In this document: positions 2,166-34,419 of the stretch, piece by piece
Numbering within the stretch: position 1 is the stretch's first letter
Layout: each line of letters begins with the position of its first letter
Source: Zancudomyces culisetae HAW-14-8
Taxonomy: Eukaryota; Fungi; Kickxellomycota
Length of the DNA: 64,000 nucleotides
Assembly (NCBI GenBank): GCA_052426225.1
Contig: JBNJNM010000011.1
Coordinates: forward strand, 1,426,001-1,490,000
Direction: 5' to 3'
The notes under the pieces: model-generated
Seen by the model: only the letters and a program-made list of their open reading frames with translations
Told to the model about the DNA's origin: nothing
Database searches by the model: none
Program-made: the position numbers and the translations under genes

Positions 2166-3892
2166 CTATCTGTGACTCAATATATCCAATAGCTGCTTTG
2201 GTAGTTTAGGGATGAAGCTAGATTCGGCCCAGTCGGGTATCTCGGTTTCAAAACTCCAATTATGCCCAGAATAACTCATGGCATGAAGCCAAATACCCAA
2301 ATCACTGATGGCTGGATCAGGATATTCTATTTGATGACATTCGGGGCAAAACGTGGTGGTTGGCTGGTTATTCGTTTTTGTATCTAAATCTGAACTACTT
2401 TCACCAACATGACCGGTATCTCGTATGTTCTCATTATCAGTAGCACTATTCAACCCAGCTGTTCCATCCATCGAACCCGCCCTTATTTCATTAAGCAACC
2501 GATCGATCAACGGCTGTAGTAGGTCCGAATTGGTATTAGCCTGTTGCTTTGACAAATCTACAATGTCATGACCACCCACGTCGAATTTTAGCTCTCCAGG
2601 ATCAACGTGTTCCAGTTTTTTTTCATCTACTTGTTCTGGAAGCTGTCCCAGGTATCCGAGCTTGGCCCCCCATATATTCGGATTGCAGTACAACGGGTCA
2701 TTTACTATGGGAAATCCAAGATATTGGAGATGAACACGGATTTGATGTGTCCTTCCTGTCTTTGGTCGGCCTATTCGAGTTACCGATTGTTATTAAACTT
2801 TATAGTTTACGAAATATATAAAATAGTACAAAGATTGCTATTGTATCCGGCTTGCATGGGCATCAATAAAAAGAAGTTTTTTTATGCTTACATATAACAA
2901 CGCTCGTATGCTCGTCGGAGAAAATCTTTTCGAATTCTGTCAAACTTTCTTTCCCACCTTCGATATCTACACAATTAAGACCAAGCTTATGTGCCACTGT
3001 TCTAATAGGTTTATCACATATCACTACTCCCTCTGGAAATGTACCTAAAACCCTGCATATATATTTCTTTTGTACTTTTCGAGCAGACATTTCTTGTTCA
3101 AGCTTTCTGGCATTTTCAGCATCGGTACCAAGTATCATCAATCCTGAAACCATACGATCTAGCCTATTTCCTAAATATATTTTGTCAACACCAAGCTTGT
3201 TTGCCATAATTTCGACCACAGTATTGTATCTATATCTGCCGCTAGGATGAACTGTAATTCCCGCGGGTTTATCGATAGCAATATACCCATTAGCTCTACC
3301 AACTATTCTAATATCCTTAGCTACTATTGGAGGTTCGTGCCTGTGAATGTAATGCGTAATTTTATCCCCATTTTTTATAATTCGATTTAGCTCGACAATT
3401 TGATCGTTGATTTTAATCAAGCCAGTATTAATTGCATTTTTCTATAGATGTATGTTTTAGAAAGATTCAGTAAGATTCAGTAAGATTCAGTACATATGAG
3501 TAGAACCCCTGGTATTAAAGACTAATTACACCAAGTGTAATAAAAGCAAAAATATGAAAAATGAAAAATGAAGATCCGAAATCGGAAATCGAAAATGTGG
3601 TTACATAATACTCTGCTTCTCGATCCTTAAATTCAGTTTTAAAAACATCGTATACACCTCTTCCAAACCATCGTAGTTTGGCGTTCACAAAGTAAGTAAA
3701 CCAATACGGCTTGACTTTTCGAAGTCCATTCTCAAAATAGTAAACTGGTTTTGATCTCATACACAACGTGTCTTCTGTTTTTGTTTGTCCCGCTTTGTGA
3801 TTTTGTTTCCTCTTTTTTGTACTCCTTTCCTGGATATCAGTAATCTCTTCTGGATGTGACTTTTGCTTATCGTTGGATATTGGAGGGTCCAT
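2166..3892 (-). CDS. RluA-family pseudouridine synthase (RPUSD2/Rib2/Pus9-like), 3 exons, ~480 aa
   Basis: Exons 3892-3605, 3441-2892, 2770-2166. Motifs [33 protein letters not shown], catalytic [10 protein letters not shown], spliced [36 protein letters not shown]. No C-terminal deaminase domain. Confidence 0.92.
3462..3491 (+). repeat. Intronic tandem repeat (AAGATTCAGT)x3
   Basis: Three adjacent 10-bp copies in intron 1 of the pseudouridine synthase gene. Confidence 0.85.
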
Positions 3893-4352: not shown

Positions 4353-5680
4353 TTATTGGCTATCTAGAGGCTTTCTAGCGACAACAAGAAACATGGGTGT
4401 GAAAATATTATGCTTTCCACCAGCAACGCAGGAATCGGAGGCCTCAAGTAAGATCTCATTAGTATCGTAGATGGCTTTTGGTATGATACGTAATAACCCA
4501 AAAAGTGCAAGCATTCCGGATGAGATTTTTCTTCCTACAACGGATTTGATGAATGCTCTTAAAGATTTGAAACTAATAAAGTCTTGGAAGAGGTCAGAAT
4601 ACCACGGCATTTCATTTCCAGGGCCGGTGATGGCAAGGTCCTCGGAGTATACCAATTCAAAACCGGCCTTTTCTATAGCACTAAGACACTCTTTAGTAGA
4701 GAAGAGCTTTGGAAGACTGTTACCATACTCGATTCCTGAAATTACTTCAGCATGCTTGGGGTTGGAGGGATCATAAGTATCAGTGGTACACCACTCGTAA
4801 ATGGCAGCTCTACCGCCTGGCTTCAGAACATTGTATATCTGTTTGTATACACCCACCAGATCAGGTGCATGACATGTTGCTTCTATGGCATATACCTATC
4901 AGTTAAAAGTAGAAAAAGCATTATTTGAAGTGGGTACTGCAAAACTGTATTACTTGGTATGGTTGAAAACTTATAAATATGACTTACAGCGTCAAAAGAA
5001 TTGTGTTCAAATGGCATATTCATGAAATCGCCTTTTACAAATTTGGTGTTTTCTGATAGCCCAAGTTTTGCGCTGTTTTTTGTCGCCTTTTCGAGTTGGT
5101 AGTCGTTGTTGTTTATACCTGTAACATGGGCTCCTGTGAGCTTGACGCATTGTCTTGCTGGTCCACCAACACCACACCCAACATCAAGAACCTTATCACC
5201 TTTTTCAATTCTGGCCTTTGAAAACAACAAATGTTCATGTCTATCGATACTCTCGTCGAATGTCTCTGTTTCGCTTCGTCTTGCAAAATGGAAGGATTGG
5301 CCCCAGCCATACTACAAATTTAATTGAATTGTGTTATGTTGGATGTTATATACACTAGAAATCATGTGATATACATTCTATCCCACAAGAGTTGATGAAT
5401 AAGTAAATCATTTTACCTCATAAAAGTCTGTTACAAGGTTATAAAAGGTATTTGTCATAACCTTATATTTGTCGCTTCTTTTATCAACGGTTTTCCCCCT
5501 ATCATTACCCCAAAAGTTTTCATAGGTGTTGTAAGAGGAATCAAAGACCTCACGGTTCTTTTTGGCCATTGTTTTTACACTCTCGAAAGGAGAATTTGGA
5601 ATAACGACATCGGCACCATGTAACAGAGTCGATGTTTCAGGAGTAGGGTCCAGAATTTCGTCTTGGTGTGCTCTAGGCAT
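4353..5680 (-). CDS. ERG6: Sterol 24-C-methyltransferase, 3 exons, ~376 aa
   Basis: Exons 5680-5417, 5311-4988, 4895-4353. Motifs FYNLVTDFYE|YGWGQSFHFARR, VLDVGCGVGGPAR, GINNNDYQ, YAIEATCHAP, LKPGG..YEW, FTPMFLVVARKP. Confidence 0.95.
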
Positions 5681-7000
5681 TTTGTCTTAGCACTTTTTTT
5701 TTGCTTGTTATTTTTTTCGTTTTGTTTTTTAACTTAACAAACTATATGAGTAATATTCCAATTATGGACCAATTTTTAATACAGTGATGAAAGCAAATTG
5801 AAAGATGTAGTGCTTAAATAACTTTTTAACGGCCTCGCTATTGTGCAATCTCCGGGTCTCTAACTTGACATCAAAAATAAAACTTGCGGAAAATTTTTTT
5901 CTGTGGTTACTATTGATTATCGCCATTTTATTGGCCTGCTTTTGTTTTGGTTAACTTTTACAGCCCACCAACACGGTTAATAATTTTTACAAATTTCTGA
6001 AATCTGATGAACACCTCAAAACCCCCAAACTTTATAATACCCATTTGTTTACCATTACTAAAACATATGGAGCAAAAAATAGGCTTTCCAATTCAAATAG
6101 GTATTAACGACTCATGGGGTCCTGCAATCTTTATTTTTTTATTCCTTGTCATACGCACCCAGGGGCATCTGCGTTTTTTTTTGTACAGAACGTCTTGGTA
6201 TCTTTTCATTATTAGTCGAGGAGAGAAGGGAGTGTAAAAGATTAGCTAAACCATCTACAGTACATTTTTAATGTGTACCTTGCGTTGAAATTGCTAGAGG
6301 ATATTTGGTAAAAAATAATAAGCCGAAGTAATTTAGGAATGGTTTTTCAAATTGGGCATAGCCACGAGTTGTTCAAAACCCATGCTTTATGTTTTTATTT
6401 TTTCAGACAGATTATTCTCCAGGAACATTATGCATGTGAAAAAAAAAACAGAAATATTTCAAGAGTGCAATCTCTTCTCTACCTTGCTATTTAGTGTAGC
6501 TCCAATAGCATTATTAACAGACAAAATTTCAAATAATATTAAATAAAAGCACAATAAAGGGCCAATAAACAGCGATAAATCGACCTTGTTCGCTTTTCAA
6601 TGATCAATGTGAATGAATAACATTTCTGGCATTCCTTTATAAAATCGCTGTTAAAAATCTTCAGATCCATCGGGTTTCCCATTACATCTTTCTTCCATCC
6701 CTATCGTTTTGTAGCATTAAAAAAGGGTTTGTCTGATGATTTCAAGCAAGGAAATTTCATTCCAGCATTATAAAATCCCGAGCTAAAAGGTATGTACTAC
6801 GATCTAAAATACCCAGCCATCTTGCCTAATTTTTCATTAATGGGTTTGCTTTATTTTCAACTGAAGCACTACTGTGTATTGTTGATACAATATGACTATT
6901 ATGAATACTGCCTAAATGTTATGTTTAGGTACAATACTTAATAAGGAGAACGAGTAAACTGCATTTTATTTTCATAATTCTTAATTATCGTCAATAAAAT

Positions 7001-32008: not shown

Positions 32009-34419
32009 TTATATTCGATTTTCGTTTTTTCTAAATGCGATGCATCTGGTAAACCCATTATAATCTTCCCACATCTTAACCGTATCCCAGTCATTATATA
32101 TACTTTTTACAATGTTAGACATTCCCTTTCCAACCTCGAAGATCAGCACACCATTGGTGTTTAAAAGGCTGGATTCAGAGTCTGCGAAGGTTTTCTGTAA
32201 ACTGTCCCTAATACTCTTGTAACACGAGTAACCACCATCTTCAGCATACAGCGAAATCGATGGCTCATGCTTGATCGAACCAGTTATAAAGCTATTCTTT
32301 TTGTGCTTGGATAAGTAGGGCGGGTTGCAAACAATAATGTCAAAGGGACCCAATGTCTTTAACACTTCGTTTTCGTGTAGTCGAGTAAAATCTCCCACTT
32401 CAAGCTGCACCCTGTGAGCAAGACCAAGTTTATTTACATTTTCTGCTGCAACAGACAAAGCATCATTGCATATTTCAAGTCCAGTACCACATGTATCCAT
32501 AGCAGAGGTCTTGGATAGGATTGAGAGTAATATACATCCATTTCCCGTCCCCAAGTCTAGAATCTTTTTCCCACCCATCTTAACAGTACCTGAAATATCA
32601 TTTATCGCCGTATCTCCGGTACATTCGAGCCCACACTGGGGCAAAAGCTCAAGCGCAGCATAAACAAGCGTTTCGGTGCTTTTTCTTGGAATCAGCGTAT
32701 CCTTAGTAACAACAAATTCAATGTCACAGAATTTCTATTTATGTAATAGATAGTATTTATACCAACCAAGTTATTTAAATATAATTAACCCAATTTTAAA
32801 ACGTTTCAGCATAAAAGGCAAAAGAATCTCCCTCTTCCCCCCCCATCTTCTAAAAAAGAGAAAGTTGTTTGCTTTACCTTCAAGTTAATTTTGTATTCAT
32901 ATGGAAGTTCGTTGACGGGGTCAATCCCCTCATAGGAACTATGAGACCTGTCGAGTTGATCGGATCTGTCACGTTCGGATAGCTGCGCCAGTTCGTTCTG
33001 AGCCTTTTCAACCTTGATATCAAAAAACTTTTTTTCTTTATCAATCAGCGAAAAGAATTTTGAGGGTATTTCATAACATACTGTCGTTTCGGGTTGAGAT
33101 GAATTAATGAGATTTTTAATCCTAATCTCACAAAGAGTCATATAAACACCTTTGCCCTTACTGTTGTTGAGCTCCTTAGTGTATTTTGCCGTTGAACCTA
33201 CCACAGGGTGTCCAAGCTCGAGCATAATTCTTCTAACTAATAAACCTGCAGCATATGATTTCTTTACAAGCACTTTTGCCAGAGTAAGATGGCCAGCATT
33301 AGCACTTTTGCTGACACTCTCCACCGTCACCTCCAGATTGTCGAGACAATCTGGCATTTGACCAGTTGTGACAATCCAATCTTCTAAACTATTATCGAGC
33401 TTGCCAGAAAAACCTGCCTTTGTTTTTTCGGAGCTTTCTGGAGTTGCGCCCTCCCTTGTGTCTTCTAGAATAGCATCAGTGGATACATTTTCATGAAGTT
33501 GTACATGGTTTTTCACCAAAGACGTGATAGTATTCTTCGCCTTAAGTCTCTCTATGGGATTCTGTATCTTACTCAGATCTCCAACACATATTGCCTTATA
33601 TATCAGCTCAACACTTCCATCCAAAATCGAATTCTCGATCCATTTTGTATAGATCCTACCACATACTATCAATACCTACATTGTTCATTACTGCAGTTTT
33701 AATACACCTGCTATTAATTTTTTTTCTCTTTCAATTGTTAAAAAACCTTAAAGATGGAATCGAATTATCCATATTTCAAGTAAAGTATTATATCCGCTAT
33801 ATCGGAAAGGTAAGTTAAATGAAATAGTTAGCTATCTTACCAATCCATTAGTTGCTTTTTCCAGCTGATTTACAACTACAAATCCATATTCAACGTTTTT
33901 AGCCCTCTCACTTAGCGAGTTTTTCACAAAATCTTGTTGTACTTTACTTGAAGATTCATGAAGTGCCACGCTAAAATTGTCAGGCAAAGATATGGCTTTA
34001 GATTCGCTTTCTGAATCTTCAGATAGCAGCGAGGCATAGCATTGTATATCTGTAATTGAAACGCCTGCGGACTTCCATAATATGATTAGCTGATTTTTTT
34101 CTTGGGTCTTACAGGTGGCTCCCGAAGTTAGCATGGGTGAATTATTCCAAAAGATATTGCTCGTCCAAACAGTTTTTATTCCAAGAGTCTTCAACTTTCG
34201 GTTCAAAATACACCTAGTATCTATAGCAACTTCAACATCATCTCCGTTCTTCAGAATAGTTGAATTTAATTCATGTTTGCCATTCAATTTGACCCGGTTT
34301 TGTTTGAATGAGTCAAATACGTCTGCCCTAGTCGGAAGTGAATCTCTAAAGTTTTTTAAAACAAACTGTAGTAGTGTTATACCTCCTGCATCACTTACTG
34401 CTTTGTGCTCTGACCTCAT
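32009..34419 (-). CDS. Fusion protein: S4-like domain + degenerate RluA pseudouridine-synthase domain + PrmC/HemK methyltransferase, 3 exons, 700 aa
   Basis: Exons 34419-33841, 33675-32878, 32734-32009, both introns phase 0 with GTAAG/GTAAA..TAG. S4: PTRADVFDSFKQNRVKLNG..ILKNGDDV. RluA-like: WKSAGV, VVNQLEKATNGL|VLIV, LIYKAICVG, LGHPVVG, KGVYMTL. PrmC: LPYEYKINLK|KFCDIEFVVTKDTLIPRKSTETLV, ILDLGTGNGCI, DIIVCNPPY, HEPSISLYAEDGG, LIFEVG. Confidence 0.85.

Follow-up and report, generated by a model that had tools for sequence, protein, structure and literature searches.

A three-exon gene of Zancudomyces culisetae joining a probable RluD-type pseudo-enzyme to a PrmC/HemK methyltransferase domain

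A 64,000-nucleotide stretch of the genome of Zancudomyces culisetae HAW-14-8 (assembly GCA_052426225.1, contig JBNJNM010000011.1; this whole stretch is called the window below) was analyzed for a gene lying on its minus strand between positions 34419 and 32009. Z. culisetae is a gut fungus of the Harpellales. The predicted product joins an S4 domain and an RluD-type pseudouridine synthase fold, with altered catalytic residues, to a C-terminal methyltransferase domain of the PrmC/HemK type. The sequence evidence indicates that the fusion is one real gene of three exons and that it belongs to a family spread across early-diverging fungi. The reading that we favor, with a probability of roughly 0.45, is that of a protein-glutamine methyltransferase tethered to ribosomal RNA (rRNA) or to the ribosome.

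Gene structure and gene model

The features of the gene, in the order of transcription, are as follows.

34419-33841, minus strand: exon 1, 193 codons, with the ATG at 34419-34417, ending in ...NQLEKATNGL and followed by GTAAGA; it carries the S4 domain (about residues 10-72) and the initial half of the RluD-like domain, where motif I reads WKSAGV and motif II NQLEKATNGL
33867-33865, minus strand: codon of Gln185, at the conserved Arg position of the RluA family
33861-33859, minus strand: GAA codon of Glu187, at the catalytic Asp position of RluA-family synthases (HRLDKDTTGL in RluD)
33840-33676, minus strand: intron 1, 165 nt, GTAAGA...CTAAC...TAG, phase 0
33675-32878, minus strand: exon 2, 266 codons, starting VLIVCGR, ending PYEYKINLK and followed by GTAAAG; its first part, down to about 33067, is the second half of the RluD-like domain (LIYKAICVG, LLVRR, LGHPVVG, KGVYM)
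33066-32878, minus strand: last part of exon 2, a family-specific PSKF...K.KKFF helix and a short remnant of the PrmC N-domain
32877-32735, minus strand: intron 2, 143 nt, GTAAAG...TAG, phase 0
32734-32012, minus strand: exon 3, 241 codons, starting KFCDIEFVV, with the stop codon at 32011-32009; it carries the HemK beta-hairpin (FCDIEFVV...LIPRKSTE) and the class I methyltransferase domain
32557-32537, minus strand: S-adenosylmethionine (SAM)-binding motif I DLGTGNG, whose D-G-T-G columns are nearly invariant in the fusion family
32326-32315, minus strand: catalytic NPPY, all four residues nearly invariant in the fusion family

The first-pass annotation of the window had spliced three open reading frame (ORF) pieces in phase 0 into one 700-residue protein, and this model was confirmed. 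Both junctions are phase 0 and the joined gene has 700 codons; motif II crosses the first junction, where NQLEKATNGL of exon 1 continues with VL of exon 2, and all the motifs quoted at that time (WKSAGV, NQLEKATNGL, LIYKAICVG, SYAAGLLVRR, LGHPVVG, KGVYM, DLGTGNG and NPPY) are present. All three exons, each searched alone, matched the same fungal proteins of 600-700 amino acids (aa), among them the orthologs P0003 (E 1e-29, 2e-24 and 1e-50 for exons 1, 2 and 3) and P0002 (3e-23, 7e-31 and 5e-53). In Coemansia reversa the ortholog (P0048) carries all three parts in a single uninterrupted ORF of 601 codons, and the fusion is therefore independent of any splicing prediction. The gene is single-copy in the 27-Mb Z. 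culisetae assembly.

Exons 1 and 2 have no Pfam match of their own, which could suggest a decayed synthase and an adjacent methyltransferase gene wrongly joined, or a pseudogene; but such an artefact is extremely improbable, as the same colinear architecture recurs in more than 20 species, once as an intron-free single ORF, the PrmC hairpin motif P.xY....K/F spans junction 2 exactly as in the orthologs, and exons 2 and 3 are joined in the deposited Z. culisetae model as well. Two separate genes were rejected on the one-ORF ortholog, the orthologs shared by the exons and this colinearity, and a pseudogene on the open frames, the canonical splice signals and the architecture kept in those species.

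The search of a representative library of 1.8 billion proteins with exon 2 returned the protein of the same species, OMH83048.1 (P0001), deposited as "Bifunctional methyltransferase", which differs from the window protein by two residues over the shared parts. The deposited proteins OMH83048.1 and OMH78599.1 are 560 aa long. The deposited model has an identical junction 2, begins at the internal Met96, by which the S4 domain is lost, and takes an in-frame acceptor at 33542-33541, by which 45 residues (VLIVCGR...IERLK) are skipped; the stretches affected are 34134-34419 and 33541-33840 of the window. Those 45 residues and the N-terminal 95 align to conserved columns of the Smittium and Furculomyces proteins (679-690 aa). 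Because the restored residues align in this way, the predicted three-exon model of 700 codons is better than the deposited one, which should be corrected. Both acceptors of intron 1 are in frame, and alternative splicing may occur.

The two modules of the protein

The N-terminal 400 aa or so were identified as an S4 domain followed by an RluD-type pseudouridine synthase fold by means of a family profile and an ortholog model. The profile (A1) was made from 28 fusion-family N-termini, with the two window exons entered as separate rows. It matched Escherichia coli RluD with an E-value of 3.8e-20, over a span that starts at the S4 domain and takes in the HQIR/HP..G motif, and more weakly RluA, RluC, RPUSD4, RPUSD1 and the trypanosome RluD-like factor. 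A profile of Kickxellomycotina sequences only, in which no member passes Pfam individually, still matched RluD with an E-value of 2e-5. Exons 1 and 2, each scanned alone against Pfam and NCBIfam, gave no S4 or PF00849 match; PF00849 stayed below its gathering score at these exons in the six-frame genome scan as well, and phmmer searches of both exons against the PDB gave nothing meaningful. PF00849 is reached only by distant orthologs (Neocallimastix P0012, 44.3 bits). This Neocallimastix protein was matched by exon 2 at 2.5e-8 in the 1.8-billion-protein library, and its N-terminus matched stand-alone proteins with S4 and PF00849 at 1.8e-16. The Pfam S4 model is passed by the Coemansia ortholog P0004 (24.6 bits). 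The protein-language-model look-alikes suggested S4 and PseudoU_synth_2, which at 0.83-0.87 serve as leads only.

The AlphaFold2 structures used here are those of the natural ortholog P0002, which is 30-40% identical to the window protein. Its full-length model has a predicted local distance difference test (pLDDT) score of 84.8 and a predicted template modeling (pTM) score of 0.76, and the model of the N-terminal part alone a pLDDT of 83.9. The 13 best PDB matches of the N-terminal model all belong to the RluA family, with the other synthase families at about Z 9; RluD was matched with Z 16.5 and a root-mean-square deviation (rmsd) of 3.3 over 209 aa, and chains of the kinetoplastid factor mt-LAF3 with Z of about 14. 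In this N-terminal model residues 1-411 aligned to RluD 4-325, and 274 of the 321 residues of full-length RluD were aligned; across the P0002 models the match to RluD was Z 16.5-17. By profile and predicted structure, then, the synthase module can be assigned within the RluA family to the RluD type, and the similarity to the pseudouridine synthase fold which had been read from the motifs alone is borne out.

In the profile alignment the catalytic Asp of RluD falls on Glu187 and the conserved Arg on Gln185, again as the first-pass annotation had it. The catalytic column was tallied in 56 fusion members and contains Glu in 40, Asp in nine, Gly in five and Lys and Gln in one each. The combination R-x-D is kept in none of the 56, as against R[LI]D in all 25 stand-alone RluD-like proteins of the same searches. 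The Asp-bearing members (Neocallimastigomycota, the chytrid Quaeritorhiza and one Coemansia) have Leu or Val at their Arg position, while the Arg-bearing Dimargaritales have Glu at the Asp position. In the closest full-length relatives (Furculomyces and Smittium angustum) the catalytic position is Gly, so even an acidic side chain is dispensable in Harpellales. Of all residues in pseudouridine synthases, the catalytic Asp is the only one described as both essential and conserved throughout (PMC3973310). Because this Asp is Glu and its partner Arg is Gln, the synthase module is probably a pseudo-enzyme.

Sequence conservation was compared between regions by reading the columns of a family alignment (A2) in which each exon forms a row of its own. 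The mean pairwise identity is 29-30% in the S4 domain and synthase core, 11% in the disordered inserts and 41% in the methyltransferase. Because the identity of the S4 domain and core is far above that of the inserts, the dead module appears to be still under constraint and not decaying, as is typical of a pseudo-enzyme that has been retained for its binding. Acidic and Ser-rich inserts specific to Harpellales are present within the synthase-like domain at about 33900-34060 and 33345-33540 of the window; they correspond to segments of the ortholog model with pLDDT below 50 and are about 11% identical across the family.

The C-terminal domain is recognized directly. Exon 3 alone passes the cut-off of the HemK family model TIGR00536 (120.4 bits, cut-off 115.5), and its best match is the PrmC equivalog TIGR03534 (7.8e-41, 140.2 bits); the cut-off of the latter (199.1) is not reached by exon 3 alone, which matches profile positions 54-252 only, the N-domain part lying outside this exon. 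Among the other models PrmB scored 90 bits and RNA methyltransferases 20-34 bits (TrmN 34, RlmF 20). PrmC/HemK chains of the PDB were matched directly at 1e-8 to 3e-9. The hairpin P.xY....F, the IPR..TE loop, EP..AL, DLGTGNG and NPPY are all present, and they are nearly invariant in the family. In the ortholog model, residues 395-684 superpose on PrmC/HemK structures with Z 27 and rmsd 2.5-2.7 (for the E. coli PrmC chain of the RF1 complex, Z 27 and rmsd 2.5 over 246 aa, covering PrmC 8-276), and on the RNA methyltransferases TrmM, METTL16, RsmC, RsmD and RlmG with Z 17-21. Sequence and model agree with the first-pass annotation on an intact PrmC/HemK domain, and they describe it as a conservative N5-glutamine methyltransferase domain. 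A protein glutamine is the more likely substrate than RNA, because all the HemK-specific motifs are kept and PrmC is structurally far closer than the RNA methyltransferases.

The N-domain of PrmC had been considered as largely replaced. PF17827, the model of this N-domain, had no match in any of the 10 family members scanned, and a module of about 400 aa has been added at the N-terminus. However, residues 398-447 of the predicted P0002 structure superpose on PrmC from about its residue 8, which leaves about 50 aa of the helical N-domain; in the model it is shortened and not wholly replaced.

Distribution of the family and related genes

Fusion members were found in Harpellales, Kickxellales, Dimargaritales, Piptocephalis and Basidiobolus, and also in Mucoromycota (Halteromyces, Calcarisporiella), Neocallimastigomycota, Blastocladiomycota (Paraphysoderma) and Chytridiomycota (Quaeritorhiza), so that the phylum-level span is Chytridiomycota, Blastocladiomycota, Neocallimastigomycota, Zoopagomycota and Mucoromycota. 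No Dikarya, animal or plant member turned up in these homology searches. The alignment-based search for homologs returned mostly stand-alone RluD proteins and a few extra fusion members, and the fold search of the ESM Atlas returned bacterial PrmC clusters only, with no fused architecture. In the tree the fused methyltransferase domains form one clade (support 100/98) on a long stem; the sequences therefore indicate a single fusion event and a family of single origin across early-diverging fungi.

The first-pass annotation had taken the protein as a candidate undescribed methyltransferase. Full-text literature searches found no description of an S4/RluD-PrmC fusion, one paper merely listing rluD and hemK among the housekeeping genes mutated (PMC2375889), and to this extent the claim stands; the protein is by no means confined to this one genome, however, as the family is present in the databases under generic or uninformative names, some of them given by similarity to PrmC. 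Both domains come from well-known families and dead synthases have precedents, while the fusion itself is new.

The Z. culisetae genome was also checked for a separate PrmC-type gene, and one is present. It codes for 482 aa with NPPY and large inserts and scores 120 bits with TIGR03534. Its identity to exon 3 is no more than 25%, and in the tree its very long branch is placed well away from the fused clade; phmmer gave no match for it in the PDB. The gene occurs in two copies, at L002:979-2424 (contig 6) and in L003 (contig 12), which are 98.7% identical over 3.66 kb and may represent a segmental duplication or a haplotig. This gene may be the true MTQ1.

The window itself has a multi-exon RluA-family gene at 2166-3892, with an intact NRLD and a PF00849 match at 2887-3285, which had been pointed out as a catalytically normal contrast and is real. 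The genome scan reported just one more PF00849 locus, on contig 8.

A 255-aa protein annotated as "release factor glutamine methyltransferase-like" in the assembly of Convolutriloba macropyga (P0076) falls inside the methyltransferase clade of the fused family. Its locus (L009:5649-7961) is on a contig of 57% GC content beside an NhaA antiporter gene. Immediately upstream, the ORF at 5649-5810 is similar to the last part of the synthase-like domain with the PxKF linker (tblastn E 3e-4). P0076 is probably an incomplete model, and the family may not be confined to fungi; an algal symbiont is one possible further carrier.

Proposed function and its alternatives

In the mechanism that we propose, the dead RluD module would have lost uridine isomerization and kept the RNA-binding surface. 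The docking site would be a helix-69-like hairpin of the large-subunit rRNA, or else a particle, ribosomal or pre-ribosomal, and the methyltransferase would use SAM to methylate the side-chain amide of a glutamine. That glutamine would belong to a protein associated with the ribosome: a release factor of the GGQ type, or a ribosomal protein, comparable to the action of PrmB on uL3. We were guided to this tethered methyltransferase by the HemK features which are kept, by the rRNA role of RluC and RluD and by the convergence of rluD and prmC on termination. The S4-bearing members of the RluA family, RluC and RluD, are rRNA enzymes, and RluD works on helix 69 in 50S subunits that are already assembled. 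Mutants of E. coli K-12 that have lost rluD and those that have lost prmC are relieved of their defects by the same better RF2 allele, RF2-B (PMC5373646), and both enzymes therefore converge on translation termination. Inactive or RluD-like synthases are known as large-subunit assembly factors in the mitochondria of kinetoplastids (PMC7703582).

Several points weigh against this proposal. Docking of the dead module on RNA or the ribosome is what we infer from predicted fold and conservation, and the structural evidence comes from an ortholog of 30-40% identity. In bacteria PrmC acts on release factor that is free, with no need for tethering to the ribosome, and a methylase dedicated to cytosolic eRF1, Mtq2-Trm112, exists already. 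The N-terminus has no obvious mitochondrial presequence, as the S4 domain starts from about residue 10 and acidic residues are present in the first 10 aa. The hydrogenosomes of the anaerobic Neocallimastigomycota have no genome and these fungi keep the fusion, so a mitochondrial release factor cannot be the universal target. Lastly, the Glu found at the catalytic position of most members (40 of the 56) could hint at residual chemistry.

It is also possible, although we regard it as doubtful, that the protein is the first eukaryotic PrmC-clade methyltransferase outside organelles, guided by the dead RluD to the large-subunit rRNA (the helix-69 region) of cytosolic or nascent ribosomes and methylating a glutamine or possibly a nucleotide there. 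If so, it would physically link two modification systems which converge genetically on termination in bacteria.

The protein may instead be an ordinary glutamine methyltransferase of free, organellar GGQ release factors, with the dead module as a scaffold, stabilizer or regulatory appendage that has no role with RNA. The conservative PrmC domain, the retained part of the PrmC N-domain with the release-factor-contacting hairpin and the PrmC-derived names of some members fit with this, but we consider it unlikely, given the separate 482-aa PrmC-type gene, the lack of a recognizable presequence, the fusion kept by Neocallimastigomycota and the conservation of the S4 domain and synthase core across the sampled phyla, which would be surprising in a simple spacer. 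A plain Mtq1 was rejected on the first three of these grounds.

Methylation of RNA, which the first-pass annotation had suggested, found no support. Here a nucleotide of rRNA or transfer RNA (tRNA), either flipped out or exposed, would be presented by the dead module, and the NPPY domain would methylate an exocyclic amine, giving N6-methyladenosine (m6A) or N2-methylguanosine (m2G). The NPPY class does include m6A and m2G RNA enzymes, which are structural neighbors of the domain at Z 17-21 (TrmM, METTL16, RsmC, RsmD, RlmG), the partner module derives from an rRNA enzyme, and the protein is kept in anaerobic fungi which have no organellar release factors. Nevertheless this reading is quite improbable: the HemK cut-off is passed, TIGR03534 scores 140 bits against 34 for TrmN and 20 for RlmF, the structural Z is 27 to PrmC and at most 21 to RNA enzymes, and the PrmC/PrmB-specific hairpin, IPR..TE and EP..AL are nearly invariant. 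We know of no PrmC-clade enzyme that acts on RNA.

A bifunctional enzyme that still makes pseudouridine with the help of Glu187, slowly or in a specialized way, and adds a methyl mark besides, is very improbable. An acidic residue is present in 49 of the 56 members, the Tyr of IYKAICVG and the Arg of LLVRR are retained, and Asp is still found in chytrid and Neocallimastigomycota members; but the Asp is universally conserved and essential in these synthases (PMC3973310), the close relatives Furculomyces and S. angustum have Gly and others Gln or Lys, Arg and Asp occur together in no fusion member as against all 25 stand-alone relatives, and the window's own exons are below PF00849 detection.

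Because fungi without organellar translation retain the fusion, and because it occurs beside another PrmC-type gene, it probably marks a further methylation target in the translation apparatus. Two folds in one polypeptide across several fungal phyla provide a natural "Rosetta stone" for the link between RluD and PrmC in termination, and the synthase half, which has probably lost its chemistry and appears to be kept under selection, would provide a clear instance of an enzyme of RNA modification reused for targeting. The protein is a conserved and testable component of the translation-modification machinery of early-diverging fungi, which can be approached with recombinant protein.

Among the known systems, E. 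coli RluD, the RluA-family synthase of pseudouridines 1911, 1915 and 1917 of 23S rRNA with an N-terminal S4 domain, is the best PDB match by profile and by structure and shares with the fusion the domain order (S4, then catalytic fold), the fold and the motif order; the fusion differs from it in the Asp-to-Glu and Arg-to-Gln changes, the two long disordered inserts, a score below the Pfam threshold and the C-terminal methyltransferase. PrmC/HemK is the glutamine methyltransferase of the GGQ motif of bacterial RF1 and RF2, with Mtq1/HEMK1 in eukaryotic organelles. The hairpin and class I methyltransferase fold, the SAM motif, NPPY, IPR..TE and EP..AL are common to it and the fusion, whereas in the fusion the five-helix N-domain is cut to about 50 residues, a module of about 400 aa is added N-terminally, the domains form their own clade on a long stem and another PrmC-type gene coexists.

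The kinetoplastid factors mt-LAF3 (RluD-like) and mt-LAF4 (an inactive synthase) share the synthase fold, which in their case is used on the large subunit during its assembly; mt-LAF4 is without catalytic residues and has a structural role (PMC7703582). Unlike the fusion, they are stand-alone proteins of another lineage, and their binding to the ribosome was seen by cryo-electron microscopy, whereas that of the fusion is suggested by its fold and conservation. The bifunctional PrmC/TrmB proteins of the PRK01544 type are a precedent for the joining of PrmC to an RNA-modification module and the source of the name "Bifunctional methyltransferase"; their partner is an active tRNA 7-methylguanosine (m7G) methyltransferase at the C-terminus, whereas that of the fusion is a probably inactive synthase at the N-terminus.

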